From the IMG/VR virus record IMGVR_UViG_3300028920_000022, positions 1 through 64,000 of that record: a stretch of DNA of 64,000 nt, one strand, 5' to 3'. The notes under the pieces were generated by a model that saw nothing but the letters and a program-made list of their open reading frames with translations, did no database searches and was not told the origin of the DNA. Shown piece by piece: positions 7,178-33,725 of the stretch. The stretch's first letter is position 1. The number at the start of each line of letters is the position of its first letter. The position numbers were made by a program, and so were the translations under genes.

Positions 7178-7615
7178 TTATTCTATAATATTTTGTATAA
7201 TTGCTTCTTTTTCAATTAGAAATATTTTTCTCAAATCTTCTACACTATCAGCAAATCTGGGCCACTCGTCAGTACCGCCTATCTCATATATATATTTTCT
7301 ATCGAAAATACTAATAATTGAAAACACATTAATTGACGTACCTTTGAACTTTTGTTCAGAATCGATAAGCCCAGTATCTGCGAAATATTGGTATTTCGAA
7401 CCAATATATTTCCATGTTTCTAACATTGCTTTGTTTTCCTCGCAATTAAATGTTTCGTATTTTCCACTCCTAAATACTGCTTTGTATATATTTGATACGT
7501 CAACCTCTGGCGAAAGCAACAAATTAACAACTTTAACCAATACACCCTGACAGTACATCCCATCAGTGTCTTCTGGGTCTTTCAAACTATTATGTACTAT
7601 GACGTAATACTTCAT
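7178..7615 (-). CDS. IIE-tail protein without zinc finger
   Basis: ends EAIIQNIIE. Confidence 0.7.
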   Translation of the reverse strand: MKYYVIVHNSLKDPEDTDGMYCQGVLVKVVNLLLSPEVDVSNIYKAVFRSGKYETFNCEENKAMLETWKYIGSKYQYFADTGLIDSEQKFKGTSINVFSIISIFDRKYIYEIGGTDEWPRFADSVEDLRKIFLIEKEAIIQNIIE

Positions 7616-7628
7616 AGTTTACCTTGAG

Positions 7629-7701
7629 CAGGGCAGTCCGGATTCGAACCGAAATCGGCGGAGTTGGAAACCACAATGCTTGCCATTTGCACCACTGCCC
7701 T
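7629..7701 (-). tRNA. tRNA-Trp(CCA)
   Basis: AGGGCAG/CTGCCCT acceptor, anticodon loop TTCCAAC, GGTTCGAATCC. Confidence 0.85.
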
Positions 7702-7753
7702 GGGTCGGTTATGCAACCTCAGTTATCAAATTAACCTTTCGGTCAAGCTTCAG

Positions 7754-7836
7754 TGCTTTGGGAGAGACTCGAACTCTCACGCCCGGAGGGCATCAAATTT
7801 TGAATTTGACATGTCTTCCTGTTCCATCACCAAAGC
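7754..7836 (-). tRNA. tRNA-Leu(CAA)
   Basis: GCTTTGG/CCAAAGC acceptor, TCAAA-TTCAAAA-TTTGA, long variable arm. Confidence 0.9.
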
Positions 7837-7841
7837 GGTTG

Positions 7842-7870
7842 TGAGTCAGGTCGGGATCGAACCCAACCGT
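7842..7870 (-). pseudogene. tRNA 3'-half remnant (T arm plus acceptor 3' strand)
   Basis: GGTTGGGTTCGATCCCGACCTGACTCA; no matching 5' strand found. Confidence 0.4.
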
Positions 7871-7934
7871 TTTACTTTGCCGCTAGCCTTAACAACGTTT
7901 AGAATTTGTTGTCTCAGTTTTTCCTCTTGTTCTG

Positions 7935-8165
7935 TCATTTCTTGTCCAAAATCTTTTCTAAGTCCTCTGCGACTTGTTCTATTCTTATTTCTCTATCAAG
8001 CTCTATTTTGATCGGATCGATAACCACCAGTTCACCCTCTATATTTTTCCTAACTTCTTCCTCTTTCTTTTTTAAAACTTTTCTTACGGATTCATCAAAA
8101 CCCCTAAGTTCGTACCTAGAAATTTCTTTAGCCCAAGTCAAACCCTCGTATTTTGCCTTTTCCAT
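7935..8165 (-). CDS. hypothetical coiled-coil protein
   Basis: start corrected to MEKAKY, just 3' of tRNA-Pro. Confidence 0.65.
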   Translation of the reverse strand: MEKAKYEGLTWAKEISRYELRGFDESVRKVLKKKEEEVRKNIEGELVVIDPIKIELDREIRIEQVAEDLEKILDKK

Positions 8166-8167
8166 AG

Positions 8168-8240
8168 TCCGGGATGCATGATTCGAACATGCGTCTCGTG
8201 GTCCCAAACCACGTGCTAAACCAAACTCAGCTAAACCCGG
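8168..8240 (-). tRNA. tRNA-Pro(TGG)
   Basis: CGTGG-TTTGGGA-CCACG anticodon arm, GTTCGAATC T loop. Confidence 0.9.
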
Positions 8241-8474
8241 TTATTCAATTATCTCTTTAATTAAGAAATCTTCGTCTGACATCTTACAGGGTAAAAACTC
8301 CTGGATCCTTTCTTTTGTTTCTTGAATTGAACAATGTACATCGTATTTCCCAGTTTTGACAAACAGTTGCAGATGTAAATGTTGTAATGGCTGCCTACAC
8401 TTTTTACAAATTATAGTCGGTGGCTCATCGTATGCCGGCGGTAACTCCTCCCAAATGTGTCTGTATCCGCTCAT
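8241..8474 (-). CDS. ZnF-IIE family protein
   Basis: HIW..CKKC..PCKMSDEDFLIKEIIE. Confidence 0.8.
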   Translation of the reverse strand: MSGYRHIWEELPPAYDEPPTIICKKCRQPLQHLHLQLFVKTGKYDVHCSIQETKERIQEFLPCKMSDEDFLIKEIIE

Positions 8475-8755
8475 TCATCCATCCATTGTTCAATATATAC
8501 AGGTCCCATTTCCCATATTTTCTTAAAACATTCGTTGAGCAAGTTCGCATCGTCTTCTTCGCAAAAATGATACATTAAAGTGTCGTTAGTGCTCCAATTC
8601 ATACACCCATCCCACTTTAAATGTCCTTTTACCCTGGTTATAGAAACGTCCTTACCATTTTCTCTCCTGTTTTCTTTTATGCTAAAATCCATACTATACT
8701 CTCCAGGAATGATTTCTAGAAAATGATATTTGCGTATGTTAACAACTTCACTCAT
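8471..8755 (-). CDS. hypothetical protein
   Basis: coupled ORF, KWDGC..HFC motif. Confidence 0.7.
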   Translation of the reverse strand: MSEVVNIRKYHFLEIIPGEYSMDFSIKENRRENGKDVSITRVKGHLKWDGCMNWSTNDTLMYHFCEEDDANLLNECFKKIWEMGPVYIEQWMDE

Positions 8756-8928
8756 TCTATTATGTCCTTGATTATCATTTCCCTCACTATTTTTTCAACA
8801 TCAACACCATTTTTGATAGCTTCTTCGCATATGAATTTAAACTCTTCTTCGTAAAATGAAGACGCTCCGTCCGGCGACAATGTTTTGGCTTTTGGTCTCT
8901 TTTTAATCCGCGAACATGGTTTATTCAT
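8752..8928 (-). CDS. 58-aa IIE-tail protein
   Basis: hand translation MNKPCSR...IVREMIIKDIIE; ATGA overlaps on both sides. Confidence 0.7.
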   Translation of the reverse strand: MNKPCSRIKKRPKAKTLSPDGASSFYEEEFKFICEEAIKNGVDVEKIVREMIIKDIIE

Positions 8929-9324: not shown

Positions 9325-9326
9325 AG

Positions 9327-9399
9327 CTCCCCGAGTTGAGATTCGAACTCACGACCACGCGGTTAACAGCCGCGCGCTCTACCACTGAGCTATCGGGGA
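9327..9399 (-). tRNA. tRNA-Asn(GTT)
   Basis: TCCCCGA/TCGGGGA acceptor, loop CTGTTAA, canonical D and T arms. Confidence 0.95.
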
Positions 9400-9406: not shown

Positions 9407-9751
9407 TCATTCTATCACTTCTTTTATTATTACCTCCTTACAACTGCATTTTACTAGTGTATTTAAATTGTCAAAATCTTTTTTACTAAAATATCCATAC
9501 GCAGTGAAAACAGATTTCTTAAAACCAAATGTACTGTTTATGTAATCCCAAGTTGTTTCTATTTTTAGATTCAGATCATTGCTTTCCAAAACTTCTTCAA
9601 CAAAATTAATTTTTGATCTTAATCCGCGCATATCGTACAATTTAGCTAAATTCGTCAAATAAAACCCTACACCTCGGCAGCATAAACATCTGTAATATAC
9701 TGCAGGACCTGAAACGTGGTCTAAAATTAGTTTATGATTCTTATCTATCAT
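9407..9751 (-). CDS. ZnF-IIE family protein
   Basis: NHKL..CLCC..SCKEVIIKEVIE. Confidence 0.75.
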   Translation of the reverse strand: MIDKNHKLILDHVSGPAVYYRCLCCRGVGFYLTNLAKLYDMRGLRSKINFVEEVLESNDLNLKIETTWDYINSTFGFKKSVFTAYGYFSKKDFDNLNTLVKCSCKEVIIKEVIE

Positions 9752-11533: not shown

Positions 11534-11995
11534 TTAGAGCGTAACCTCGAAACCTTCGTTTAACTGATCGTCAGCGTCACTGACATCTTCGGGCTTTTCT
11601 TCCTCTTTTTGTTCTTTTTGCCACTTTGAGAAGGATTCGGTAGAACCGTCTTCATGGGCTTTCATCCATTTTCCATCACACGAATAAGCAATATCCTGGT
11701 TATCTTTTACCTTAACTTCGTTGGCTCCGACCATATCCATTTTCTTCATAATTTCGTAACAAGCCAAGATAGCTTCTCGTGAGGATTCTACACCTTCTCG
11801 GTATTCGTCTGCTAGCTGAGTAAGATTAGACAGGTTACTTTCGGCGTCCTGCAATTTTGCTTTAAGATCCGAATAGGTTTTTTTAATCTTTCCCAAGTGT
11901 TTTTCTACACTTTTACGGGAGTGTTTACCATTCAGTTTTTCTGGTCTTTTAGCCGCCAATGAGATAAGAATACGTTTTCTTTGGATAGATTTCAT
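11534..11995 (-). CDS. coiled-coil hypothetical protein
   Basis: heptad-rich centre, acidic C-terminus. Confidence 0.7.
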   Translation of the reverse strand: MKSIQRKRILISLAAKRPEKLNGKHSRKSVEKHLGKIKKTYSDLKAKLQDAESNLSNLTQLADEYREGVESSREAILACYEIMKKMDMVGANEVKVKDNQDIAYSCDGKWMKAHEDGSTESFSKWQKEQKEEEKPEDVSDADDQLNEGFEVTL

Positions 11996-12085
11996 AAAAA
12001 GCCTAAAAATAACAATCTTATCTGTATGCGGCGATATTACCCTGGAATTTTGTCGATGACAGCGCTGAGAATGACCGAGCTATAT

Positions 12086-12505
12086 ATGGCAAAAATAGAC
12101 CCAAAGAAAATGGAAGCCTTTATCAAAAAGAGTTTGAATCAAGTTTTGGCGCCATTTTGTGGAGAAAAACTAACAGAAACAACCGAAGATATTATTAGAC
12201 ACCAGCTGATAAACAAACTACAAACCCTAAAAACGGCTAGAACAATAGATGATTTTGATATTCGTGGAATTAGTTTTTCAGATGATGGGCGTGTAGATGT
12301 TTCTTGTGATATCCAACCCAGCATTCTTGGCTGCGAACTTCTATCCCCAGAAAATTATGTTACACATGACTGGGTGGATGATTGTGTTATCAAGCGATGT
12401 CATACCTGTGGTTTGGTTATTCAAATAAATGATGGAGAATATTTGGTATCTATTGGAGACAATTTGAGCTGCCAAGAATATGCTATCAGAGAAATAATCG
12501 AGTGA
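12086..12505 (+). CDS. ZnF-IIE module fused to a tail-sheath-C-like domain
   Basis: start MAKIDPKK; HDW..CHTCG..SCQEYAIREIIE; sheath resemblance judged by eye only. Confidence 0.65.
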   Translation: MAKIDPKKMEAFIKKSLNQVLAPFCGEKLTETTEDIIRHQLINKLQTLKTARTIDDFDIRGISFSDDGRVDVSCDIQPSILGCELLSPENYVTHDWVDDCVIKRCHTCGLVIQINDGEYLVSIGDNLSCQEYAIREIIE

Positions 12506-13086
12506 AAATATCATCCAGAAAAATTAGAAAAGTTCCTTACGAAGCACGCAAAGAATTAATTAAATGCATGGAAGGAAACGAGTTTGATGTAGAAGCCAGC
12601 GCTTTGCTTAATGATTTTCCGGATACCGATCATTCTGACTTAATATTGGTGGCGGCAGAAAAGAAAGAAAAGAATTTTCTATTGAGGCTTCTTGAAAACC
12701 CAAAAACCGATATAATAAGTGTGGTTACGGTACTTGTGGGATATCAGTTGGTGGGTAGAAGCAGTATTAGTATTTTATATGATTTGAAAAAGCATCATTT
12801 GCGCAATCCGGCTCTACCGGAAGCTTTTAGGATAATGGAAGATTATATAGTTGAGTGTTATGAGCGCGCGGCTCATCAACCATATCCTTCGCCATATAAC
12901 TACTACGCCCTGACCTTCTTTTTCGAACAAAATATTCCTCATCGAGATGAGAAAAAACTTATCCGAGCATTATTTTCAACTCCTGCTGGTGTAGAGTGGG
13001 TGCGCAGATTCGCGATAAAACTTCCCGTTCAGGATCCGCTGCGAAAATTTATAGATAATATGATGGCTATTTACGACATTATCTAG
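12502..13086 (+). CDS. helical hypothetical protein with IIE-like tail
   Basis: GTGA-coupled, ends MAIYDII. Confidence 0.65.
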   Translation: MKISSRKIRKVPYEARKELIKCMEGNEFDVEASALLNDFPDTDHSDLILVAAEKKEKNFLLRLLENPKTDIISVVTVLVGYQLVGRSSISILYDLKKHHLRNPALPEAFRIMEDYIVECYERAAHQPYPSPYNYYALTFFFEQNIPHRDEKKLIRALFSTPAGVEWVRRFAIKLPVQDPLRKFIDNMMAIYDII

Positions 13087-22712: not shown

Positions 22713-22720
22713 GAAAAAGC

Positions 22721-23946: not shown

Positions 23947-24128
23947 CTTTGCTGTGACTCACTATTGCTGTTGTTATATTAGCACACCCTAGTAAAATTG
24001 ACAAGCATATCATAGCCCCAATAGCTCGAAATAAAAATTCGTCAGGAGATAAGTATATTGCTAAAGTCTCCGTTGGTACAACGAAAAGTAAAGTAATACC
24101 ATTGATGTGTATAATTTTTAGTTTGTGA

Positions 24129-24326: not shown

Positions 24327-24544
24327 TTTAGCCCCCTTAACATTCCAAGAACACGTTGCCTAGCCGCCAACTCATTTTCCCATCGCCTAACAATAGCCGT
24401 TTCTTTCTGTCTAAAATGAGGGTATAACTCTACCCGCTCGTTAGCAGCTTCTAACATGTTTTGGGCATGTTGAACCTGTTGCTCTAAACGTGTCTGTAGC
24501 TCTTTGACAATAAGAGTTACTTTGTTGTTGATCTTGTCAGTCAT
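24323..24544 (-). CDS. coiled-coil hypothetical protein
   Basis: start corrected to MTDK. Confidence 0.55.
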   Translation of the reverse strand: MTDKINNKVTLIVKELQTRLEQQVQHAQNMLEAANERVELYPHFRQKETAIVRRWENELAARQRVLGMLRGLK

Positions 24545-25460
24545 TGAAAAACCTATCCGCATAACAAAACTGAAAACCACACCTGGAAGCAAACGTTTCG
24601 TCCGCCTTCAGATCTCCCACCATTAAACATAACGCTGGGTTTAATTTATATTTGACGATAAAATATACTCCGATACCAGGCATCGGCTTTCTACTCCACG
24701 TTCTAATCGGTGGTACTCCAGAAGGATCGAATTTGTAATCAATATCATGACCCAGTAGTTTATTGGTATATTCAAACAACTCAGTAGCTTTTTCCAACGT
24801 CAGGTCTTTTTTAGCAACTCCGGATTGATTTGATGCCCCACACAAAATGAACCCATTATTTTTGAATTCGGTTAACTTTTCTGCGCGCTCCGGGAGTATT
24901 TTTATTTGACTTTTTTCGGTTGGAAACTTACCATTTCCCCCAACACAATCTCTCAATGTTCCATCGTAATCCAAGATTAGTGCTTTGTTTTTGAATGATG
25001 AATTCCAATTCCTTTTGAATGGCACCTTAACTATTGAATCAAAACCTTCTTCCGTAGTGGGTTTTTGAAATTCCTTACGATATTTGAAAATAACAGCAGG
25101 CGGAAAAATGCCCGGGTCATTAGATTGAGATTCTAATATTTGATTATATTTATTCATGGATCGCAAACAATAATTAACCTGAGAGTCTTCAATTGAGGTT
25201 TGCATCCAATGGCATTCTACATTAGCTTTGTATTTCTTGGCTAGGTCAATAAATGGTTTTCTAGACGTTTGAGTAGCAAATAGGTTGTCCAACACTATAT
25301 TTGAACCGTTTTTGAGTTGCCGTTCCATTTCTGGCAACAGGGAGTTTAATTTGCCGCCGACTGTATCTCTGTTCAAACGAAAATATCCCTCATTCAGAAA
25401 CTGTTCTGTGACGGTAGTTTTTCCTGAGGCGGGAAAACCCAAAACTAATATTACGTTCAC
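24537..25460 (-). CDS. polynucleotide 5'-kinase/3'-phosphatase (PNKP-like; P-loop plus HAD-IIIA)
   Basis: GFPASGKTT, LDYDGTLR, SNQSG, RKPMPG, MVGD..D. Confidence 0.9.
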   Translation of the reverse strand: MNVILVLGFPASGKTTVTEQFLNEGYFRLNRDTVGGKLNSLLPEMERQLKNGSNIVLDNLFATQTSRKPFIDLAKKYKANVECHWMQTSIEDSQVNYCLRSMNKYNQILESQSNDPGIFPPAVIFKYRKEFQKPTTEEGFDSIVKVPFKRNWNSSFKNKALILDYDGTLRDCVGGNGKFPTEKSQIKILPERAEKLTEFKNNGFILCGASNQSGVAKKDLTLEKATELFEYTNKLLGHDIDYKFDPSGVPPIRTWSRKPMPGIGVYFIVKYKLNPALCLMVGDLKADETFASRCGFQFCYADRFFND

Positions 25461-25729
25461 TTTTCTCTACACCTTAGCAACTGTCGTTCGTAACCTTCGA
25501 CCCACACCCAACCGTGCGGACATACAGATTGTATATAGTCTGTACAATTCACACCAACACCATAACACTCAAAAACCATAGCTGGTTGCCCATCTGCAGC
25601 CATGGTTTCCTCAACACTATGATGTGGATAACTTGCCCAAACACCAAAGCATATGATGCCTATAAGCGTTATACTGAAAAATGAAAAACACAGTAGTTCC
25701 TGGTAGTCCCTCATACATCCAATCTCCAA
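25457..25729 (-). CDS. small membrane-anchored Cys-containing protein
   Basis: TM helix plus C..C..CPHG. Confidence 0.55.
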   Translation of the reverse strand: MEIGCMRDYQELLCFSFFSITLIGIICFGVWASYPHHSVEETMAADGQPAMVFECYGVGVNCTDYIQSVCPHGWVWVEGYERQLLRCREK

Positions 25730-25776
25730 TCACCTTCCAGTAACGTTTTCCTTACCCAAATAGTGAGTGCGAATAA

Positions 25777-26442
25777 TTACTCTTGCACCCATGGGGACTG
25801 GTTTGTGTAGGGTTGGTTGCATTGTATACTCCTCTTGAATTGTTCCAACCTATCATAAAACCGCGGCTCCCACAAGTTCAAATAATCTTTTCCTTTTTGA
25901 GATGGATTATTGATTAATTCAAAATATATTTCGCCGCATTTTTGATAATCTAATATTTTTCCGTGCTTTGTAATTTGTGTGCCAAAATCTAAAACCCTCA
26001 TGGCATGAAATAATGATTTCTTTGCCTTCTCCAGACTGCCGGCAGTAAAACGCACCTCAGCTTTTTCAAAGTCTAATCTGGATTTTCTACATATGTTGTT
26101 CGCAAGTACGGTTTTGTTTGGAGTAAAACTAAAAACAGCCGTATTCAGTAGCAACAACTCTTCTGGTAAGAAAATACATTCCATTGCGGAGATAGAATGT
26201 TCCTTTAGTTTTTGAGAAAAAGATTGGGTATCGTACACTATGGCACTGAATTGCCTACCTAAGTATTCTCCCTTCAAATTTAGGCAATCTATTTCTATTG
26301 GTTTAATATATGTATTACCCACAACAATATAATCGTAGTCTGATTTGTGGGAGTTTGTACCATATACACGTGACCCAAACGGATATACATTGAGCACATC
26401 CGCATTATTGAGGTTCAGGGCTTTAATCAAATGACCATACAT
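25777..26442 (-). CDS. Pol-beta superfamily nucleotidyltransferase
   Basis: YPFGSRVYGT..SDYDYIVV; KKSLFHAMRVL. Confidence 0.85.
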   Translation of the reverse strand: MYGHLIKALNLNNADVLNVYPFGSRVYGTNSHKSDYDYIVVGNTYIKPIEIDCLNLKGEYLGRQFSAIVYDTQSFSQKLKEHSISAMECIFLPEELLLLNTAVFSFTPNKTVLANNICRKSRLDFEKAEVRFTAGSLEKAKKSLFHAMRVLDFGTQITKHGKILDYQKCGEIYFELINNPSQKGKDYLNLWEPRFYDRLEQFKRSIQCNQPYTNQSPWVQE

Positions 26443-26720
26443 TAATTTGTTTTTTGTCTTTGTCTAAGAGCGGAACGAAAAACGAAATCGTATACATCCA
26501 TATACTCTCGTGTTCCGCCGGAAACTACTCCTTCTATTTCAAAATCTCCCTCACCACTCTGCGCCCCAACTGTCACTGCGCATATCGCCAAACATTTCAT
26601 CATTTTTAAGGCGTCCTCTTCCTTTTCTAGATCTATAGAGAGTTTTTTCGCCGTACGTTTCAAACTTTTTAGCATTTCGTTTACGAGGTTTTCTTCCCAA
26701 ATCTGTTCTTGTTCTTTCAC
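26442..26720 (-). CDS. hypothetical protein
   Basis: coupled to nucleotidyltransferase gene. Confidence 0.55.
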   Translation of the reverse strand: MKEQEQIWEENLVNEMLKSLKRTAKKLSIDLEKEEDALKMMKCLAICAVTVGAQSGEGDFEIEGVVSGGTREYMDVYDFVFRSALRQRQKTN

Positions 26721-26916
26721 TAATAGAAACCTTTCTTTTTCTAATTTCCTTTTTAGCCATTTGCTCGCATATTAAACAAGCACGACATTCGTACTGTATT
26801 TCTTGTTTGTTTTTGTAAATCGTATGTTTGAATCGTATTACTGGGTGCCCGGCATGATCCGTGTCCCATTCTTCCGTTAAATTGTGTTCTTTGCAATCTG
26901 TTCCGGATATTTTCAT
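26551..26916 (-). CDS. hypothetical protein
   Basis: ATGA-coupled start; 3' part overlaps next ORF. Confidence 0.4.
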   Translation of the reverse strand: MKISGTDCKEHNLTEEWDTDHAGHPVIRFKHTIYKNKQEIQYECRACLICEQMAKKEIRKRKVSISERTRTDLGRKPRKRNAKKFETYGEKTLYRSRKGRGRLKNDEMFGDMRSDSWGAEW

Positions 26917-27500
26917 TTGGAAAGCACCACCACCATGTGACCATTAACCCAATCAAACGAAAATTTTCTTGCCCCGCATTCTTTACACATATCAATCATA
27001 TTTTGTTTACTAAAATAATGTAAATGATGGGGATTATTATCTGGTTTGGATGGTACCGAAATTATTGAATATTTTGTGGAAACCCTAACAATTTCTTGCA
27101 AAGCCTTTGTGGGGTTTTCTAGGTGCTCTATGACTTCCAGAGCAGTAACGACATCAAAAGAATCGTTGTGAAAAGGTATTGCGGAAATACTACCAAGAAC
27201 GAGAGAAATGTTAACCCCTCCGTTTTGTAGCTTGGATAAGATTTCAATTTTGCTAGGGTCGTTGTCCAAAACAGTGACTGATGTTTCTGGAAATTCCTCT
27301 AACAAAGGGTACAGGAAGCCACCGCGACCATAACCTATATCTAAGATAGAAGCCGGACACAAGCCTTTAATGATGCCGAGGCACTTTTTTACCCTGGGAA
27401 GTATATTTTTCCTTTTGAAGTCTAATAATATTTCTTTTCCGCCACCTTGTATAAAACAATTGGCAAAGCGCATATAATGTGTTTTGTCATTCAATGACAT
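26913..27500 (-). CDS. class I SAM-dependent methyltransferase
   Basis: ILDIGYGRG, SFDVVTALEVIEHL; start uncertain. Confidence 0.9.
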   Translation of the reverse strand: MSLNDKTHYMRFANCFIQGGGKEILLDFKRKNILPRVKKCLGIIKGLCPASILDIGYGRGGFLYPLLEEFPETSVTVLDNDPSKIEILSKLQNGGVNISLVLGSISAIPFHNDSFDVVTALEVIEHLENPTKALQEIVRVSTKYSIISVPSKPDNNPHHLHYFSKQNMIDMCKECGARKFSFDWVNGHMVVVLSK

Positions 27501-27840
27501 CACGAATGATACAATTTCTACAGGAATACTCTTCAATATTGTCGCTGGCTTTTCCAAGCCAGCGAAATGGAGAGCCCTGATACCAGTGCCAAATATTTCC
27601 GGTACATGTTACAGAGAATTTATTTTTACAGTTTGGACAAACAAAAACAATATCAGTAAAACCAAATTTAATTCTTTTCCAGAAAGGGATTTTGTGACCA
27701 ACACGAAGTATTTCTTTTATGGCAAAATCTTTATTCTTAAAAATTTCTTTGTAGTGTAGAGCGTTCAAATCTCCTATGTCGTATGCCCAGCACAACATCT
27801 GTGCCGTTTGTTTTTTAGTTTTTATTTCTTGTGGGGTCAT
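27487..27840 (-). CDS. ZnF-IIE family protein
   Basis: VGH..CPNC..SCRNCIIRDVIE. Confidence 0.8.
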   Translation of the reverse strand: MTPQEIKTKKQTAQMLCWAYDIGDLNALHYKEIFKNKDFAIKEILRVGHKIPFWKRIKFGFTDIVFVCPNCKNKFSVTCTGNIWHWYQGSPFRWLGKASDNIEEYSCRNCIIRDVIE

Positions 27841-28145
27841 TTGATAATATCCTTAATAATCAAATCATCACAACGAGCAGGTTCTGGTGTTTTATGTTCC
27901 ATTGGTCCGCGAACTGGTTTGCATATATAGTCTTGGAAAAATGCGCCAACTCCGTCTAAATATTCGCTAAACAAATATATGTCATTACTATTGTCAACGG
28001 CAAATATATTTTCACACCTTTTGCATTTATAGAAAACATATTCGATGCAACAATCTTTTACATCCGAAGACATTTCAGTACGTACCACATTATGTCCGAG
28101 ATCTTCCATTTCACGGGCAACAAACATGTCCATAAAGGAATTCAT
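27837..28145 (-). CDS. ZnF-IIE family protein
   Basis: LGH..CKRC..RCDDLIIKDIIK. Confidence 0.8.
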   Translation of the reverse strand: MNSFMDMFVAREMEDLGHNVVRTEMSSDVKDCCIEYVFYKCKRCENIFAVDNSNDIYLFSEYLDGVGAFFQDYICKPVRGPMEHKTPEPARCDDLIIKDIIK

Positions 28146-28618
28146 GTGATTATTTCCGCGATATCGTTCATTTTTTCAAGATCGCTGTACTTCATTATCG
28201 AATTAGCGAATTCATTCAACAAATTAAGATCAGCTTGTTGTTCTTCCTGATTACTTTCAAAAATTGGCATAAACAACATTTCATTTTTGTGTGGAAATAA
28301 ACGAACTGTAAAATCTAAATTCAAAGATTTATATTTTTTGTAATTATCAGAAAAGTAATAATAATCTCTTCCGCACAACTCAAAATACTTTTGTTGATTG
28401 TCAACTCGATCTTTGATTATGATCACGTATCGTTTATAAGGTTGCTGTTTGTTACAATAACCACATTTTCTATCGCAACCTATCACGACGGTATGATTCC
28501 AGTTAAGTTCGTGCACATAATATCTATATGGGGTAGAAATTATTCTAAATGTTGATCCATATACTGGCACAAATATAGGCAACGGTGGTTTTGTTTTCAA
28601 CGTAGTGGGGACAATCAT
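28142..28618 (-). CDS. gp32/SSB-core-like domain with IIE tail
   Basis: FRII..YYVH..C...CGYC..RYVIIIKDR; ends DIAEIIT; SSB resemblance by eye. Confidence 0.55.
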   Translation of the reverse strand: MIVPTTLKTKPPLPIFVPVYGSTFRIISTPYRYYVHELNWNHTVVIGCDRKCGYCNKQQPYKRYVIIIKDRVDNQQKYFELCGRDYYYFSDNYKKYKSLNLDFTVRLFPHKNEMLFMPIFESNQEEQQADLNLLNEFANSIMKYSDLEKMNDIAEIIT

Positions 28619-28875
28619 TCGATTATTTCCCGAATAGTTTCTTCGTTTTGGGTAGAAACAATTATTTTAGCATTACGTATGCCCAACTGCCAATCTCTGC
28701 GTACTACAGTTCCGCATCGTATACAAACAAACTTGTCAATAGTATCACCTTCGTTGCATTCAAATTGCCCGTAATATTCCCACACATGACTGCAACCGTT
28801 GTTTAGTTTTTGTTTATCAATATCTGAAAGAGAATTAATACTGTATTGTAGAATGTTCTCGAAAACCAATTTCAT
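28615..28875 (-). CDS. ZnF-IIE family protein
   Basis: CSHVW..CIRCG, ends TIREIIE. Confidence 0.75.
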   Translation of the reverse strand: MKLVFENILQYSINSLSDIDKQKLNNGCSHVWEYYGQFECNEGDTIDKFVCIRCGTVVRRDWQLGIRNAKIIVSTQNEETIREIIE

Positions 28876-29339
28876 TCAATTATGTCCTTGATATCAAGCT
28901 CTTCTTTGGTTAGATAGGTGTGTTGTTGCCAATAATGAACAAATCTGACGGCATCCATTATATTAACAACATTATCGAGTACATTATCAAATGTTTGAAT
29001 AAGAGGAGCTTTGTCACCGAGATTAATCCATTCGTTCCACTGGTCTAGTACCCAAAAACTGGCTTTAGCCAACTTAATTCTTTTTCGGTCACGGGCACGA
29101 TACCAATCTTTTGATAATATTTCCTCTAAACACATGTCAATTTTTTCGCACGACATTTTGTTCCTATCAGTAGTAATAGGACTACGCCCATATCCTACGA
29201 TAATTGTCTGGCTTTGGTTATTATCGCCTATTATTTCTTTACTTTTCCACACACCACACTTATTACATCGAAACAGAATCTGTGTCACATTAGGTGCAAT
29301 GTCGTGCACAACAATTTGTCGAAATGCGTGTTTAGACAT
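28872..29339 (-). CDS. ZnF-IIE family protein with extra domain
   Basis: KHAF..CNKCG..SC, ends LDIKDIIE. Confidence 0.75.
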   Translation of the reverse strand: MSKHAFRQIVVHDIAPNVTQILFRCNKCGVWKSKEIIGDNNQSQTIIVGYGRSPITTDRNKMSCEKIDMCLEEILSKDWYRARDRKRIKLAKASFWVLDQWNEWINLGDKAPLIQTFDNVLDNVVNIMDAVRFVHYWQQHTYLTKEELDIKDIIE

Positions 29340-29826
29340 ACAAATTATTTTCCTTAATATATTTTAGAACAGCTGGAAGCAGGTAGTGTTTGTGATTTTC
29401 AAAATCTTTTCTAATCCGGGTTGATGATATGGAGCTACGTTTTACAGGAAAAAGAGTTACCTCTTTTATAAGATCGGGGTATTTGTGCCAATTAGGAAGA
29501 TCGTGTACTACATCTTCCCCAACCAGTAGATGAATATCATCCATGATGCCCTGTTGACGCAGATACATTACCACATCATAGGAATACACTTTTTGTTTTG
29601 TTTTCTCCGTTAATATTTTCTCTATATCAGAAACCTCTATATTATCGAACGCCAATTTACACATTGCCATTCGGTGTTCAAAAGAAACTAGGCTTTTGCC
29701 ATACGGGTGTTGGTATACAGGGAACACTATAGCACGAGAGAACCCTCTTGCCGCTTGAAAAAGAGCTTCCGTATGTCCTACATGAGGAGGGTTGAAACTA
29801 CCACCAAATATCAATAACTTATTCAC
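29332..29826 (-). CDS. nadD: nicotinate/nicotinamide mononucleotide adenylyltransferase
   Basis: FGGSFNPPHVGH, HRMAM, LVGED..L.NW, ISSTRIR. Confidence 0.92.
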   Translation of the reverse strand: MNKLLIFGGSFNPPHVGHTEALFQAARGFSRAIVFPVYQHPYGKSLVSFEHRMAMCKLAFDNIEVSDIEKILTEKTKQKVYSYDVVMYLRQQGIMDDIHLLVGEDVVHDLPNWHKYPDLIKEVTLFPVKRSSISSTRIRKDFENHKHYLLPAVLKYIKENNLYV

Positions 29827-30203: not shown

Positions 30204-30577
30204 TCGATCACCGATTTGATGTAGCCCTCTTTATGGCTCATGGTACAAGGAATTTTGATTGACGGGGTATGTCTTTTTGGGTACGCACAGCAAGCGATCC
30301 AAGGTGAGCAAGGTTCGTGTTCTCTTTTAATATTATTGAATTTGTAATGCAATACTATATAATGTTTTATTATTTCTGATCGAAGCAGTCCACATTTTAC
30401 ACACCGATGTTTTCCGTTTTGTTTTTCGAACATATGCGGAAAGTTTTGTTTCCATACTGCATCACTCATCGTACAGGGGCGTTTGTTGAATCGATCTTGC
30501 ATTAGACATTTGTAGAAGCCACATTTGACACAAAAAGATGAATCCTTTCCGTACCATTTCCATTTGTGTCGATTCAT
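30200..30577 (-). CDS. ZnF-IIE protein, two zinc knuckles (paralog of 29823)
   Basis: same architecture, PCTMSHKEGYIKSVIE. Confidence 0.8.
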   Translation of the reverse strand: MNRHKWKWYGKDSSFCVKCGFYKCLMQDRFNKRPCTMSDAVWKQNFPHMFEKQNGKHRCVKCGLLRSEIIKHYIVLHYKFNNIKREHEPCSPWIACCAYPKRHTPSIKIPCTMSHKEGYIKSVIE

Positions 30578-30798
30578 TTAATTACCTCAGCAATGCATAT
30601 TTCTCTGCATGGCATTTGACTGGTGTAAAAAGCTTTTTTAGTATTATCCCAATATCTAACCGCGGTTCCCACACCATACATCAATGTGCCACAACTTTTG
30701 CACAAATATGCCTGGTGTTCTTCGTTATATACCAAACGATAATGACCCAACTTTCTAAACAAATGTTTTTGCTGTCTCTGTGGTGGAACAGTTTTCAT
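30574..30798 (-). CDS. ZnF-IIE family protein
   Basis: LGH..CKSCG..PCREICIAEVIK. Confidence 0.8.
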   Translation of the reverse strand: MKTVPPQRQQKHLFRKLGHYRLVYNEEHQAYLCKSCGTLMYGVGTAVRYWDNTKKAFYTSQMPCREICIAEVIK

Positions 30799-31115
30799 TC
30801 TATTATATCTTTTACTAAATAATCGCGACAAGATATTTCGTTTCCTATCCAACGTATGTATCTATGTTTAGAAGTGGACCATACATACAGATCACTATCT
30901 TTTACAAACACTCCGTTTTTTCGATATTCTGTTATTTTGAATAACGCATAACACTTTATACATTTCCAGCATGTTGAAATCTCTGTATACGCATTACCAC
31001 ATACAAAGGCAGTGTCCATAAGCTGGTATGTATATTCGTATTCTACTTCGTGCCCCTCGCACCGAAATAGTGTTGTAAGAGCCTCTACGCTCGGAACCAC
31101 CAAATCGTTGCTCAT
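30795..31115 (-). CDS. ZnF-IIE family protein
   Basis: EGH..CIKC..SCRDYLVKDIIE. Confidence 0.8.
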   Translation of the reverse strand: MSNDLVVPSVEALTTLFRCEGHEVEYEYTYQLMDTAFVCGNAYTEISTCWKCIKCYALFKITEYRKNGVFVKDSDLYVWSTSKHRYIRWIGNEISCRDYLVKDIIE

Positions 31116-31324
31116 GTAATTATTTCTAAACCAGCCAAAGCGCTACATGAAATATAAGATATACGTGCAGCAATTCCTACATTGTCGATATGAGCGGCAC
31201 ATAATTCCCCAGAAGAATTGTTCCAGAAAATAAATCCACAATCGTAGCAATGGTATACATTGTCTACTACTTTGACAAAATCTTTGTGATGATTAACACA
31301 TAGATATTTGGGCAAGTCTGTCAT
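31112..31324 (-). CDS. ZnF-IIE family protein
   Basis: CYDCG..SC..LEIIT. Confidence 0.75.
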   Translation of the reverse strand: MTDLPKYLCVNHHKDFVKVVDNVYHCYDCGFIFWNNSSGELCAAHIDNVGIAARISYISCSALAGLEIIT

Positions 31325-31584
31325 TTTATTATATCCATAATAATCTGGTTCTTACATGTGGTGACGCTAAAATTCCAACTATCTAGATCAAAATTTTTGT
31401 TTGAAGTCACCCATACGCACCCATGGTGTCCAACTGCAAAATACGACAAACACCCCGGACACCAGTATGTGCTGTATGCAAAACTACATTTCTTCACAGA
31501 CGGCTGTATGGCGTGTCCAAGAGATTTGAGATATCGTATCCCTTGTTTTCTGATCGCATAACGTCTGTCTTTAAAGGAAACCAT
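31321..31584 (-). CDS. ZnF-IIE family protein
   Basis: LGH..CPGC..TCKNQIIMDIIK. Confidence 0.8.
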   Translation of the reverse strand: MVSFKDRRYAIRKQGIRYLKSLGHAIQPSVKKCSFAYSTYWCPGCLSYFAVGHHGCVWVTSNKNFDLDSWNFSVTTCKNQIIMDIIK

Positions 31585-31842
31585 TTATTCGATAATATTT
31601 TTGATTATCAACTCTTTGCAAGGAATTTTGGCATTTTCTGTTTGCACATTTCTCCTATGCGAAGGACTATAATATGATCTGGAATAATTTTCTAATTCAA
31701 TTTCGTTGTTCCAATTAATCGTGAAAAAATAATCGCATTTTACACAATGGAATTGTCTTTCGGCAACATATTCTACATCATGTCCCAACTTTTTAAGTTG
31801 GCGCAAAGGTGCGTCTCTGCCGGTAGAAAAGAAGCTTGTCAT
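31585..31842 (-). CDS. ZnF-IIE family protein
   Basis: LGH..CVKC..PCKELIIKNIIE. Confidence 0.8.
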   Translation of the reverse strand: MTSFFSTGRDAPLRQLKKLGHDVEYVAERQFHCVKCDYFFTINWNNEIELENYSRSYYSPSHRRNVQTENAKIPCKELIIKNIIE

Positions 31843-32078
31843 TCGATAATGTCCATTACAATCATTTCGCTACATTTCATTCCGGCAAACTTGCTAGTTG
31901 CTACACTAGATTGCCCGTCCGATATAGTAAAATATACATCGTTGTTTGGTACAATTACAGCCTGAAAACGATTTACCACAAACTGAAATCCACAGTTACG
32001 ACATCGCATGGTAGGGTCAATGTCGTGTCCTAGGTTTTTTAATTGACGTAGCACTAGGTTTTCAAAATATTTTTGCAT
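31839..32078 (-). CDS. ZnF-IIE family protein
   Basis: LGH..CRNCG..KCSEMIVMDIIE; start uncertain. Confidence 0.75.
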   Translation of the reverse strand: MQKYFENLVLRQLKNLGHDIDPTMRCRNCGFQFVVNRFQAVIVPNNDVYFTISDGQSSVATSKFAGMKCSEMIVMDIIE

Positions 32079-32116
32079 AACGTAGCTTATAACACAGTTG
32101 CGCAATAATTGCAACA

Positions 32117-32350
32117 CTATTCGATAATATTTTTGATCACCAGCTCGTCGCATGTTTCTCCGTTGTAATCAGCGAATTTATAAAAATAATCTGGGAAAAC
32201 ACCAAAAGCTCGTGAGCTTACACCAATAGAATTGAAACGAATTGAAAAATAATATCCACATTTGTTACAAAAATATAAATCACACTTTATGTGTGGTGTT
32301 AAATGGTGTCCTCTCATGCGTAGGAAATCTATGTTCTGATCAATCTTCAC
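32117..32350 (-). CDS. ZnF-IIE family protein
   Basis: RGH..CNKCG..TCDELVIKNIIE. Confidence 0.8.
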   Translation of the reverse strand: MKIDQNIDFLRMRGHHLTPHIKCDLYFCNKCGYYFSIRFNSIGVSSRAFGVFPDYFYKFADYNGETCDELVIKNIIE

Positions 32351-32805
32351 TCGATTATGTCCTGTATTTCCGATAGATGATTAAGGTGTTCTAGTCGAAG
32401 ATTAAGATTTTCCGTATAATGACGAAATCTATCGACTTCAGATTGCATCTCGTTGATGGCGTTTTCTATGTATATTTTTTGTTCTATTGGATTCCAATAT
32501 ACACTATCATCCTTGACAGGTAATAATATACGACTACCATCAAATCCTCTACCGGATGCGGTTGTTGACCACCGATCGTGCCAGGGTCGGTTGTCTACCC
32601 TGATATCAATTGTACCAATTGATGCGTTTCTCTCCTCAAAATATGGCACTATAACATAGGCGTATATTTTCTCTTTTGGTAGCCACAACCTGCTTACCAT
32701 AGGATTCTCCAGCCAACGTGCGCCAGGCAGCGGCTCTACGTCTTCCGGCACAGAAATGATGTCAAAGTCGTCACCAAAAAGAGTAACACAATCATAAACT
32801 CTCAT
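32347..32805 (-). CDS. IIE-tail protein without zinc finger
   Basis: ends EIQDIIE after a coiled coil. Confidence 0.7.
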   Translation of the reverse strand: MRVYDCVTLFGDDFDIISVPEDVEPLPGARWLENPMVSRLWLPKEKIYAYVIVPYFEERNASIGTIDIRVDNRPWHDRWSTTASGRGFDGSRILLPVKDDSVYWNPIEQKIYIENAINEMQSEVDRFRHYTENLNLRLEHLNHLSEIQDIIE

Positions 32806-33035
32806 GTAATTATCTCCCAAATATAAGTATCCTTACAAGGAATATCGGTACAATTGGGGTCTCCATATCTAAACCTTCCTTTTGAATCTAAAATCCTTGC
32901 ATACAGTATACCTTCTCCGTCTGTATCGAATTCACGCTTGCATTCCGTACATTTGTATACTATTCGTCCGGAAGTGGAATCTACAGTAATGGTATGTCCC
33001 TTGTTTTTCAAGTATGTAACCCATGGGCTATTCAT
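32802..33035 (-). CDS. ZnF-IIE family protein
   Basis: KGH..CTEC..PCKDTYIWEIIT. Confidence 0.8.
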   Translation of the reverse strand: MNSPWVTYLKNKGHTITVDSTSGRIVYKCTECKREFDTDGEGILYARILDSKGRFRYGDPNCTDIPCKDTYIWEIIT

Positions 33036-33280
33036 TTGATAATATCCCTTACTATAAAGTCATCACAGGTTTTTAAATTAGGACCACTTAATATTGTCCC
33101 ACCCGCCGGGCTGTAACAAATGTATGCCATATTTGTTTCTCCGATAGCAAGTATATAAATGCGCCTGTTTAATTTTTGTATTCTAAATTTATGATTGCAA
33201 TTAGAGCAAACCAAATGTTGTGGTGTTCCACTAATATTGTGACCACGGTCTTCTAAAAATATTTGCCAGAGTTTTTTCAT
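33032..33280 (-). CDS. ZnF-IIE family protein
   Basis: RGH..CSNC..TCDDFIVRDIIK. Confidence 0.8.
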   Translation of the reverse strand: MKKLWQIFLEDRGHNISGTPQHLVCSNCNHKFRIQKLNRRIYILAIGETNMAYICYSPAGGTILSGPNLKTCDDFIVRDIIK

Positions 33281-33314
33281 TCGAGTCTTTTTGTTTTTAT
33301 TTTGTAATTTACTT

Positions 33315-33725
33315 ATGACTCATAACATTTATTCGGGAACTGCTACTCAGCCAATAGCAGCTTATCCTACAGTAAACGGCGGAAACGTTACTATAACGGC
33401 TGGAACCACAACCAGTTGGAATTCTGGTAATACAATCGTTGTGGGTGGAATGACTACTGATGGGTACATGAATTTTGCCGCGCAAGAAACAAAAACAATC
33501 ACCGAGGAAATTAAGCCGTGGAAAAGATTATGGTGTTCTATTTTCGGACACAAAGAGGTAAAACCACAAAATTCAGTTTCCATATATGTAATGGATAACG
33601 ATGGAAATAGATATCAAAAAGATTTCAAGTGTTGTTCTAGGTGCGGATTGTACGAAAAGTATTCTATTGAAAGGGCTGTTCCCTTGACCGAAAACGAACA
33701 AATTATCAAAGATATTATAACTTGA
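33315..33725 (+). CDS. inverted ZnF-IIE protein (C-x3-GH..CSRC type)
   Basis: start MTHNIY; WCSIFGH..CSRCG; ends QIIKDIIT. Confidence 0.7.
   Translation: MTHNIYSGTATQPIAAYPTVNGGNVTITAGTTTSWNSGNTIVVGGMTTDGYMNFAAQETKTITEEIKPWKRLWCSIFGHKEVKPQNSVSIYVMDNDGNRYQKDFKCCSRCGLYEKYSIERAVPLTENEQIIKDIIT

Follow-up and report, generated by a model that had tools for sequence, protein, structure and literature searches.

Many small proteins of a 459-kb marine-sediment phage end in the same Ile-rich residues, although some of them appear to have nothing else in common. This raises the question of whether the shared tail is a portable element that is selected as protein, or merely what the ribosome-binding site (RBS) of the next gene happens to encode. 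The original prediction held that the tail occurs on proteins without a zinc finger and on larger fusions, that it is kept where a tRNA or a convergent gene follows, that the recognisable enzymes of the same operons lack it, and that it therefore works at the protein level as a sorting, docking or degradation signal and is not only a by-product of the RBS. To address this question, we analyzed a 64,000-nt stretch of the phage record IMGVR_UViG_3300028920_000022 (positions 1 to 64,000; denoted the window) together with related metagenomic phages. About 100 small proteins, most of one zinc-binding family but several unrelated, were found to end in a ten-residue Ile-rich predicted helix (…I-I-K/R-E-I-I-E), which is conserved as protein even though its codons also carry the RBS of the next gene.

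Occurrence of the tail in the window

In our gene models for the region 2.5-48.6 kb, 98 of 131 genes end in Φ-I-x-x-I-I-x-stop, including 11 of 42 genes outside the zinc-finger (ZF) family. To exclude chance, the last seven residues were scored with a position-specific matrix built from the ZF tails. The C-termini of the 42 non-ZF genes split cleanly, with 11 scoring ≥7.8 and 31 scoring ≤−15.9, whereas none of 5,873 internal 7-mers reached 8. At the nucleotide level, a 36-nt DNA pattern of the tail gave 7 matches against 0 in shuffled sequence. The observation behind the original prediction is thus confirmed: all the coordinates it listed check out, including the three carriers followed by tRNAs, the convergent case and the four tail-less enzymes (Table 1). 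One of its examples, 12502-13086, is weak because it lacks the last residue.

Next we asked which carriers are truly unrelated to the ZF family, using a ZF hidden Markov model (HMM) from which the tail had been trimmed. Several genes proposed to be unrelated turned out to be diverged ZF paralogs, namely 33291-33725 (E 0.025), 28872 (N-terminal ZF, E 5e-5), 28615 (E 1e-5) and 9407 (E 0.06). The larger proteins 11981 and 18499 carry a C-terminal ZF, as judged from their sequence pattern only. No ZF similarity was found with this model for 7178, 8752, 16997, 17401, 19107, 28142 and 32347.

Table 1. Coordinates of tail-bearing genes, tail-less genes and neighboring features in the window. L049 is the syntenic relative used for comparison; orthologues are those of the gene in the same row.
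Coordinates	Strand	Feature	C-terminal residues	Stop, downstream context and remarks
3683-7138	-	Array of 13 ZF-type genes with the tail		Next to the tRNA cluster
3609-3683		tRNA-Glu
3683-4003	-	Carrier	DIKEIIE	TAG stop, whose last base is the 5' base of tRNA-Glu
7178-7615	-	Non-ZF carrier (145 aa)	AIIQNIIE	TAA stop; no SD (CAA AAT); next gene starts 39 nt downstream; uncoupled
8167-8240		tRNA-Pro
8241-8474	-	Carrier	LIKEIIE	TAA stop, abuts tRNA-Pro
8752-8928	-	Non-ZF carrier (58 aa)	MIIKDIIE	ATGA overlap
9326-9399		tRNA-Asn
9407-9751	-	Carrier	IIKEVIE	TGA stop; tRNA-Asn lies 7 nt downstream
11981-12505	+	174-aa protein with N-terminal extension, C-terminal ZF and tail	CQEYAIREIIE	Coupled (GTGA) to 12502-13086
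12502-13086	+	Carrier of a weak, one-residue-short tail	AIYDII	TAG stop; orthologue L049:1177-1782 ends TVFDIIV, has a TAA stop and faces a convergent gene
16997-17404	-	Non-ZF carrier (135 aa)	LNIKEIIE	Orthologue L049:2781-3200 ends LMIKDIIE
17401-17901	-	Non-ZF carrier (166 aa)	NIIKEIIE	Against its L049 orthologue the body is 35% identical, but 7 of the last 8 residues are identical and 6 of those 7 codons differ synonymously
18499-19110	-	203-aa protein with C-terminal ZF	CEEKIIEDIVV	Orthologue ends EIIREVIT
19107-19379	-	Non-ZF carrier (90 aa)	YIQDVIV	Orthologue ends SIQDIIV
19637-19891	-	Uncoupled ZF gene	VIRNIIV	TAA stop, 36-nt gap; uncoupled orthologue ends VIKNIVT
19888-20328	-	PTH2		No tail although ATGA-coupled
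22721-23464		Thg1		No tail although ATGA-coupled
24537-25460		PNKP		No tail although ATGA-coupled
28142-28618	-	Carrier (158 aa)	NDIAEIIT	CxxC pair but no similarity to the ZF profile
28872-29339	-	ZF domain at residues 4-67, degenerate internal tail (CLEEILSKD), 90-aa extension, fresh terminal tail	LDIKDIIE
29332-29826		NadD-like		No tail although ATGA-coupled
30574-38929	-	Mixed array, mostly ZF genes with the tail		Also holds 32347-32805, 33715-34020, 35517-35720 and 35926-36285
32347-32805	-	Non-ZF carrier (152 aa)	SEIQDIIE
33291-33725 (or 33315-33725)	+	Inverted ZF paralog with GH...CxxCG core	QIIKDIIT	Convergent with 33715-34020; no SD (AAA GAT)
33715-34020	-	Tail-less gene
35517-35720		One-residue-extended tail	IIKHIIEH
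35926-36285		Tail-less gene
37109-37363	-	Uncoupled carrier	IIKYIIE	TAA stop, 139-nt gap; no SD (AAA TAT)
38926-48579	-	Uninterrupted array of 42 small ZF-family genes (59-90 aa); typically N-terminal MKIGTH or MSHKF, then CxxCG	C-N/D-E/D-Φ-I-I-R/K-E-I-I-E/K (typical)	41 of 42 end in the tail
39471-39650		Truncated gene of this array		No tail
41299-41550		Gene of this array	KEII	Lacks the last residue
42888-42923	-	Example tail and translation-initiation region: TGTAATGATTGGATAATACGGGAAATAATCGAATGA	C-N-D-W-I-I-R-E-I-I-E	GGGA is the SD, 9 nt before the ATG that overlaps TGA
46479-46718	-	Uncoupled ZF gene	IIREILI	TAA stop, 73-nt gap
48349-48579	-	First gene of the array, uncoupled	IIGEIIV	TAA stop, 29-nt gap

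RNA and protein layers of the tail

Analysis of the tail codons (numbered back from the stop) revealed two superimposed layers. In RNA, codons -5/-4 (A/C-R-G GA-N; AAG/AGG/CGG + GAN) spell an AGGA or GGGA Shine-Dalgarno sequence (SD) 9 nt before the next ATG. In about 85-90% of carriers the stop overlaps the next start, and 172 of 208 coupled tails have the 4-nt ATGA overlap, for which the last codon ends in A to complete the ATG. Accordingly, synonymous choice in the tails differs from that in the gene bodies: AAG makes up 50% versus 24%, CGG 30% versus 6%, ATA at -3 76% versus 45%, and ATC at -2 48% versus 14%. The RBS layer, which the original prediction under-weighted, is therefore real, and synonymous sites at -5, -3, -2 and -1 as well as the acidic residue at -4 are shaped by coupling.

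The residues are nevertheless selected for themselves. Conservation is three-periodic, with third codon positions nearly random: they hold only 0.06-0.4 bit of information at -2, -4, -6 and -8 to -10, against 1.4-2 bit at codon positions 1 and 2. Of 152 ORFs picked by the tail-trimmed ZF HMM, 137 score as tails and 11 are minor variants, while only 3 are truncated and 1 is extended. Across 117 representatives at ≤50% identity, Ile68 and Ile69 are the only near-invariant columns besides His6, Cys25, Cys28 and Cys60, so that they are as conserved as the zinc ligands. Sets chosen by tail score are partly circular, which we controlled for by this selection on the ZF body and by the use of orthologues.

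To compare synonymous with non-synonymous conservation, we aligned eight window-versus-L049 pairs (seven window carriers, with 17401 set against two L049 paralogs); L049 is the only syntenic relative that covers the non-ZF carriers. The last eight residues are 59% identical against about 42% for the bodies, yet 21 of 38 conserved tail codons (55%) differ synonymously. Tail-less genes stay tail-less in this comparison.

We then compared 19 strictly uncoupled tails, from genes followed by a tRNA, a convergent gene or a gap, with 208 coupled ones. In the uncoupled tails, TGA stops fall to 0% from 85%, the acidic residue at -4 to 37% from 72% (p=0.003) and GGA to 21% from 45%, whereas Ile/Val at -7, -6 and -3 is unchanged. 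In this small sample a slight relaxation is seen at -2 (Ile 79% versus 96%, p=0.011). The SD energy of uncoupled tails returns to background, at -2.6 against -2.2 kcal/mol in coding controls. Conversely, tail-less overlapping junctions have the same SD energy as tail junctions (-4.0 for both), and 20 coupled junctions manage without the tail.

Unrelated carriers and predicted structure

To find out whether the tail is shared beyond the ZF family, we examined related metagenomic phages, in which the same 12 residues end otherwise unrelated proteins. A profile-profile alignment (hhalign) of the ZF family with a Cys-less paralog family (MKY), which has a different predicted fold, aligns only the last 12 columns. 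The tail is also carried by DUF4116 repeat proteins (Pfam E 1e-32 and 4.5e-37) and by an L12-CTD-like protein (E 1.6e-7). Only 12 of the 120 closest DUF4116 homologues carry it. In a further sequence, L089, it is found on a 431-aa protein and on a DUF4116 protein that faces a convergent gene.

AlphaFold predicts a C-terminal helix in both the ZF and MKY families, at residues 60-69 (mean pLDDT 83) and residues 90-99 (mean pLDDT 89), respectively; the pLDDT of the last ten residues is about 85 in both models, with pTM values of 0.70 and 0.80. The helix has a broad Ile face with i, i+1, i+4, i+5 spacing and, in the ZF family, starts at Cys60. It is placed with about the same confidence as the rest of each domain, so that it may simply pack on each domain and a purely structural role remains possible. 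Leu accounts for only 0-3% at -7, -6, -3 and -2, although it makes up 26% of I/L/V/M/F in the bodies; this strict preference for Ile/Val is odd for a helix, and our model does not explain it.

The ZF family resembles zinc-ribbon and treble-clef mini-proteins in its short beta-rich domain with a CxxC knuckle and a last ligand at the N-terminus of a helix. Its ligand set, however, is H-x(~18)-CxxC-x(~31)-C, and it gave no Pfam or PHROG hit above threshold and no Foldseek match in PDB or BFVD.

Interpretation of the tail

Taken together, the reading offered by the original prediction is supported in part: the tail is portable and under selection as protein, but no specific role as a sorting, docking or degradation signal emerged, no receptor was found, and several of the supposedly unrelated carriers belong to the ZF family. 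The RNA layer and the selection on the residues are what our data demonstrate; the mechanism, including any binding through the helix, is inferred.

The arrangement resembles translationally coupled ATGA-overlapping genes with the SD inside the upstream ORF, in which synonymous codon choice is likewise bent toward the SD, but here the residues are conserved far beyond what the SD needs, persist without coupling and recur on unrelated proteins. Short C-terminal docking peptides, such as the SSB C-terminal tip, the Hsp70/Hsp90 EEVD and clamp-binding motifs, are also position-fixed motifs on otherwise unrelated proteins and more conserved than the bodies; the phage tail differs in being an Ile-rich predicted helix that ends in E or K, has no known receptor and may be part of the fold. 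Poxvirus ankyrin-PRANC/F-box-like proteins likewise form large tandem paralog arrays of small variable domains or repeat proteins that end in one conserved short C-terminal module, but the present module belongs to a prokaryotic virus, is only 10-12 residues long and has no homology to F-box. By analogy with C-terminal degrons (ssrA tag, ClpX C-motifs), such a C-terminal peptide could mark many proteins for one machine; known tags end in non-polar or basic residues (LAA, or the MuA type), whereas the phage tail ends in I-I-E or I-I-K.

Among the alternatives, the one that survives best, although we consider it unlikely, is an intramolecular cap: the helix would only complete the hydrophobic core of each small domain, anchored by the last zinc ligand in the ZF family, without a shared partner, and would have spread by junction recombination and stayed wherever it stabilized the recipient. 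The confident placement of the helix, its start at Cys60 and the conservation of Ile68 and Ile69 are consistent with this view. Against it, the same near-invariant Ile pairs occur on unrelated folds and on DUF4116 repeat proteins that normally lack such a helix, a core-packing helix would usually tolerate Leu, Met or Phe, and the protein ends exactly one residue after the Ile-Ile pair even in uncoupled genes.

Less likely still is that the carriers assemble with each other, their helices bundling into hetero-oligomers as a sub-case of an intermolecular role. Dozens of carriers are translated from the same coupled operons and the helix has a broad Ile face, but direct evidence is lacking and the helix is only about 2.5 turns long. 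A cis-acting nascent peptide, in which the last residues in the exit tunnel at the stop codon would tune termination so that the ribosome re-initiates at the overlapping ATG, is very doubtful. It would explain residue-level selection, the exact distance to the stop and use on unrelated proteins inside operons, and the last residues affect termination efficiency in E. coli; however, the tail persists before tRNAs, convergent genes and long gaps, and coupled junctions exist without it.

A pure by-product of coupling, in which the residues would be only what an AGGA SD, an A/T-rich spacer and an ATGA overlap happen to encode in the fixed frame, with tails on unrelated proteins being retained 3' ends that keep the RBS of the next gene, is largely refuted as the sole cause. 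The position of the SD exactly at codons -5/-4 with optimal spacing, the synonymous bias toward it, the prevalence of ATGA coupling and the drop of TGA and of the acidic -4 residue upon uncoupling speak for it. Besides the periodicity, the orthologue, uncoupled-gene and tail-less-junction data, however, an A/T-rich spacer would equally allow K, N, Y, F and L, yet only Ile/Val occur and C is the commonest third base at -2; the motif also persists in a 20%-GC contig in which -5/-4 are often E-E, E-N or Q-N. That all carriers are one diverged ZF family is equally improbable despite the ZF-related cases above, because seven carriers show no ZF similarity, the MKY family has a different predicted fold, DUF4116 and L12-CTD are independent Pfam families, and most DUF4116 relatives lack the tail.

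We therefore favor, with moderate confidence, a dual-coded element. In this view, the last 10-12 residues, [S/T]-[C or I/V]-x-[D/E]-Φ-I-I-[K/R]-x-I-I-[E/K]-COOH, form a C-terminal amphipathic α-helix with a broad Ile/Val face at -11, -8, -7, -6, -3 and -2 and an acid-base-acid ladder at -9/-5/-1, which in the ZF family starts at the fourth zinc ligand. The module always sits at the extreme C-terminus and has been joined to unrelated domains in a clade of large phages: small H-C-C-C zinc proteins, a Cys-less α/β family, DUF4116 repeats, an L12-CTD-like protein and orphans. Its spread to new genes most plausibly went through recombination at the conserved junction of tail and next start. Most likely, it is a common protein-protein interaction helix, through which many different small binding domains, co-expressed from long translationally coupled operons, would engage one shared partner or each other, and which the enzymes of the same operons do not use.

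Occurrence of the tail and its carriers

The source contig IMGVR_UViG_3300028920_000022 (Ga0272441_10000008) is a 458,729-bp viral contig from a marine-sediment metagenome, and only one DNA run contains the sequence, as contigs. From about 2.5 to 48.6 kb of the window (GC about 36%), almost everything is a minus-strand chain of small genes, with 8 tRNA genes at 3.6-10 kb. Rfam found only these 8 tRNAs. No suppressor tRNA is present, and each gene after a TGA restarts in another frame with a family-typical N-terminus, so the standard code applies. Megablast and tblastn searches of the INPHARED phage set yielded no match.

To determine how many genes end in the tail, we built gene models by chaining stop-to-stop frames. 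Of 131 models, 95 end in [IVLM]-x-x-[IV]-[IVL]-x-stop and 3 more lack only the last residue. Most carriers (84 by sequence pattern) belong to one family of 59-100-aa proteins, here termed the ZF family, with invariant H6, C25, C28 and C60, which look like an H-C-C-C zinc site (ligand pattern H-x~18-CxxC-x~31-C). The family consensus is MKIGTH…YYxCxxCGxI…ISCNEWIIREIIE. A position-specific score (PSSM) for the last 7 residues separated the 42 non-ZF genes cleanly: eleven score >=7.8 and 31 score <=-15.9, and none of 5,873 internal 7-mers reaches 8. The motif is therefore specific to the C-terminus and is not a composition effect.

The original prediction held as an observation: all coordinates that it named are correct, as are the tRNA and convergent-gene neighbours and the tail-less NadD-like, Thg1, PNKP and PTH2 genes. 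Next we asked how unrelated the carriers are, using a ZF profile from which the tail had been removed. This profile recognised four of the carriers in question, and two more have an evident C-terminal ZF by sequence pattern, so the convergent-gene example and the larger "fusions" of the original prediction are family members; it found nothing in seven other carriers. The features concerned are collected in the table below.

Coordinates of features in the window and in related loci
Position	Strand	Feature	Observation
38926-48579 and the whole 2.5-48.6 kb chain; loci L003, L053		ZF family	About 85-90 copies in the window and further arrays elsewhere in the same 459-kb contig
28615		Carrier	Recognised by the tail-less ZF profile (E 1e-5)
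28872-29339		Carrier	N-terminus recognised by the tail-less ZF profile (E 5e-5); degenerate internal tail copy, then a terminal tail
33291-33725	+	Carrier, convergent-gene example	Recognised by the tail-less ZF profile (E 0.025)
9407		Carrier	Recognised by the tail-less ZF profile (E 0.06)
11981, 18499		Carriers	C-terminal ZF evident by sequence pattern
7178, 8752, 16997, 17401, 19107, 28142, 32347		Carriers	No match to the tail-less ZF profile
47856-48122		Carrier, CDEYAIKYNELVIREIIE	Degenerate internal tail copy, then a terminal tail
40618-40890, 41977-42201		Carriers	Degenerate internal tail copy, then a terminal tail
39471-39650		Truncated family member	Keeps the MKIGTHNF start and the CxxCG knuckle, lacks the last Cys and the tail; 42-nt gap follows; probably a decaying paralog
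3683-4003		Carrier, TAG stop	Last base of the stop coincides with the 5' end of tRNA-Glu (position 3683)
8241-8474		Carrier, TAA stop	tRNA-Pro starts right after the stop (8240/8241)
17898-18086; L049:4600-4785		FmdB-type Zn_ribbon_8 protein (E 2e-16) inside the same operon	74% identical between the two phages; last 8 residues identical; no tail
19888-29826		Tail carriers interleaved with tRNA- and RNA-related enzymes	PTH2, two radical-SAM proteins, Thg1, PNKP, a nucleotidyltransferase, a methyltransferase and a NadD-like protein
40894-48155	-	Weak sigma-70-like matches (TTGTRA-N18-RATAAT, 9 of 12)	Recur at about 18 junctions, formed by the Cys-Asn/Asp codons and the E-I-I codons; 78 sites in the region against 54 ± 8 in shuffles
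48600-64000		Region after the array	GC rises from about 36% to 46-50%; genes switch to the plus strand with loose spacing; may be a different module or an acquisition
50274-50735		RadC-like JAB protein	In the region after the array
62569-63075		PGDYG protein	In the region after the array
L051:1843-2097		ZF member	On Ga0068857_100000058
L051:4432-4692		86-aa protein, MORN/YwqK-like by eye	Ends EEWIIFQIIN; no Pfam hit at E <= 0.01
L039:7881-8366		161-aa phage protein with an L7/L12 C-terminal-domain match (E 1.6e-7)	Ends ILIKDVIT

At the two tRNA junctions, RNase P processing would cut the mRNA at or inside the stop codon, in a tRNA-punctuation-like layout. The FmdB-type protein shows that not every small zinc protein here uses the tail.

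Pfam and PHROG searches with ZF and non-ZF carriers yielded nothing significant; for known zinc-ribbon families the best Pfam hits had E 0.04-0.07, below gathering, and there was no PHROG hit at E <= 0.01. Word-indexed homologue searches for a ZF member and for 7178 returned only themselves or a 99% variant, a search for related loci with protein 16997 returned only the window's own contig, and an ESM Atlas search for 17401 gave no lead. The tail DNA pattern gave only single, chance-like matches in 185,579 genomes, and hence no host clue.

RNA-level and protein-level constraint

The stop codons of most tails overlap or abut the next start. In 172 of 208 coupled tails (window plus relatives) the stop is the TGA of an ATGA or GTGA overlap (-4 overlap), and 15 have a -1 overlap. 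Codons -5/-4 read AAG/AGG/CGG + GAN, which places an AGGA/GGGA Shine-Dalgarno (SD) 9 nt before the ATG; the GGA sits at -5 (position 3) to -4 (position 2) in 45% of tails, and the mean duplex energy is -4.0 kcal/mol, against -2.2 in coding controls. Synonymous usage in tails, as compared with gene bodies, is bent accordingly: Lys AAG at -5 (50% against 24%), Arg CGG at -5 (30% against 6%), Ile ATA at -3 (76% against 45%) and Ile ATC at -2 (48% against 14%). The last codon ends in A in 83% of coupled tails. Part of the pattern is thus indeed RBS-driven.

Nucleotide constraint alone does not, however, suffice to explain the conservation, and four lines of evidence support selection on the residues. 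First, information content is three-periodic: it is 1.4-2.0 bit at codon positions 1 and 2 of the Ile codons, but 0.06-0.4 bit at most third positions. Second, when genes were selected by the ZF body only, 137 of 152 ORFs had the tail and 11 were small variants, while only 3 were truncated and 1 was extended. In that set, positions -7, -6, -3 and -2 are Ile in 69%, 89%, 86% and 92%, with Val next; Leu is 0-3%, although it makes up 26% of I/L/V/M/F residues in the bodies. An A/T-rich spacer rule would equally admit Lys, Asn, Tyr, Phe and Leu. Third, a profile search of 1.84 billion representatives found 326 family members (clusters at 50% identity); of the 147 short hits listed, 137 end with the tail exactly at the C-terminus. 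Ile68 and Ile69 are the only near-invariant columns apart from the four ligands.

Fourth, contig L049 (Ga0307377_10009088) is syntenic with window 11.2-23.5 kb. All seven window carriers with L049 orthologues keep the tail there (eight gene pairs, because 17401 matches two L049 paralogs), and eight tail-less genes stay tail-less. The last 8 residues of carriers are 59% identical, against about 42% for their bodies; in tail-less genes the figures are 53% and about 67%. Of the conserved tail codons, 21 of 38 differ synonymously, against 16 of 34 in the controls. The clearest case is the non-ZF protein 17401, whose body is 35% identical and whose tail is 7/8 identical, with 6 of those 7 codons changed. 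The condition under which the original prediction would have failed, namely synonymous sites as conserved as non-synonymous ones, was thus examined and is not fulfilled.

To separate the two constraints, we compared coupled with uncoupled tails. Nineteen tails have no start within 12 nt downstream and no overlapping start; what follows is a tRNA, a convergent gene or a gap of 13-190 nt.

Codon and residue features of uncoupled and coupled tails
Feature	Uncoupled (19)	Coupled (208)	p
TGA stop	0%	85%	1.4e-14
Acidic residue at -4	37%	72%	0.003
Asn at -4	37%	9%	0.002
GGA core	21%	45%	0.053
ATC at -2	5%	27%	0.05

The SD pairing energy of the uncoupled tails falls to the coding background (-2.6 against -2.2 kcal/mol), whereas Ile/Val at -7, -6 and -3 is unchanged; only -2 relaxes slightly and conservatively, with Ile 79% against 96%. 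Conversely, 20 overlapping junctions behind tail-less genes have the same mean SD energy (-4.0) as the 86 behind tails, demonstrating that coupling does not need the tail. The acidic -4, the G at -5 position 3, the final A and the TGA stop are therefore RNA-driven, while the Ile pattern, and largely the K/R at -5 (84% when uncoupled), are protein-driven. We also considered a promoter (TTGTRA-N18-RATAAT) spanning the Cys codon and the tail. This was rejected as the main constraint because only weak 9/12 matches were found, with 78 sites against 54 ± 8 in shuffles, and the relevant third positions are not conserved.

Carriers in related contigs and predicted structure

A scan of metagenome contigs with the tail DNA pattern found, besides the source contig, many contigs with arrays of tail genes. 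After removal of the last 12 residues, the carriers fall into many unlinked clusters. Contig Ga0068857_100000058 (62 kb; the two loci read, L042 and L051, have GC 19-21%) has about 35 tandem copies of a Cys-less family, MKYKIKYL…YYGxSExDL…IKLIKDIIIEEIIE (the MKY family), and profile-profile comparison with the ZF family aligns only the last 12 columns: sC~E~IIkeIIE against ~IkdIIIkeIIE. DUF4116 repeat proteins (Pfam PF13475, E 1e-32 and 4.5e-37) and the protein at locus L039 with a ribosomal L12 C-terminal-domain match also carry the tail; the latter may link the tail carriers to translation factors. Among the 120 closest DUF4116 homologues, only 12 short ones have the tail and 108 lack it, so it is an addition to a widespread domain. 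In contig L089 the tail x-M/I-I-K-D-I-I-E ends six different proteins, including a 431-aa protein followed by a 235-nt gap and a DUF4116 protein facing a convergent gene. In contig L090 it ends the ZF and DUF4116 proteins but not the metallophosphatase or the RNA ligase (RNA ligase 1), with which the carriers are interleaved. Each contig seems to have its own tail dialect at positions -5/-4, shared across unrelated families: L089 and L013/L033 use K-D, L020/L050 use K-N, and the window's main array uses mostly R-E or K-E. This could reflect co-evolution with a partner, intragenomic conversion, or host RBS preference.

AlphaFold models were built on family alignments. The ZF member is predicted to form a small beta-rich domain with a C-terminal helix at residues 60-69 that starts at Cys60 (pLDDT 83, pTM 0.70), and the MKY family an alpha/beta domain with a C-terminal helix at residues 90-99 (pLDDT 89, pTM 0.80); these are confidence values only, without coordinates from which burial of the helix could be read. 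Foldseek searches with the ZF model found no match in PDB or BFVD at E <= 0.001. On a helical wheel, we infer that positions -11, -8, -7, -6, -3 and -2 form a broad hydrophobic face and that -9/-5/-1 (E/D, K/R, E/K) form an i/i+4 salt-bridge ladder, which would explain why K/R at -5 survives uncoupling while the acidic -4 does not.

Interpretation and alternative readings

Taken together, the analysis establishes that the tail is a dual-coded element under selection at the protein level, independently of neighbouring genes, and that it is strictly C-terminal, occurs on unrelated domains in several phages and is absent from the enzymes of the same operons. What it does is inferred: we propose a common interaction helix, either docking to a shared partner or assembling the carriers with each other, and binding of any receptor belongs to this inferred part, as the analysis covered only 64 kb of the 459-kb genome. 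The original prediction, that the tail is a portable signal acting as protein for sorting, docking or degradation, is accordingly supported only in part, namely in its portability and its selection as protein. Spread by recombination at the conserved junction is likewise inferred; the longest DNA identities between paralogs (42-73 nt at 86-93%) lie over the gene 3' ends that encode the tail. In the carriers with a degenerate internal copy, a few to 90 residues precede a fresh terminal tail, and the terminal position seems to be restored after insertions. As to degradation, ssrA-like and ClpX C-motif degrons have an LAA-like or basic MuA-like C-terminal end, which the tail does not have: its last residue is E in 58%, K in 22% and T in 7%, preceded by I-I.

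Among the alternatives, a purely structural role remains a serious possibility, although we consider it less likely. A cis-acting nascent-peptide role is unlikely, given the uncoupled carriers, and the readings of the tail as a pure RBS by-product or as the end of a single diverged family are largely excluded. A more far-reaching version of docking is not excluded but remains doubtful. In this view the tail would be a universal adaptor plug: a huge phage would encode a library of more than 100 variable mini-binders (zinc proteins, DUF4116 and other repeat proteins), all docking through the same Ile-rich C-terminal helix to one host or phage machine, such as a protease, the ribosome or the procapsid. 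This would be a prokaryotic counterpart of the ankyrin/F-box-type target-recruitment families of large eukaryotic viruses, and the coding sequence would have co-evolved to double as the RBS of the next library member.

Literature searches for the motif and for paralog arrays in huge or jumbo phages found nothing relevant, and we found no description of the family. C-terminal docking peptides and SD-in-ORF coupling are both known; what differs here is their superposition in a >100-member array and the transfer of the module between unrelated domains. The data thus identify an undescribed, very large family of phage mini-proteins, with about 100 copies in one genome, and a 12-residue C-terminal module that unrelated proteins in several uncultivated large phages share. 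They also provide a clean natural example of one 30-nt stretch serving two codes, in which coupled and uncoupled copies separate the RNA constraint from the protein constraint. If the helix is only structural, it is still a compact, transferable capping helix of interest for protein design; if it is a docking tag, a single bait could reveal the hub that a huge phage uses to deploy a whole library of small effectors.
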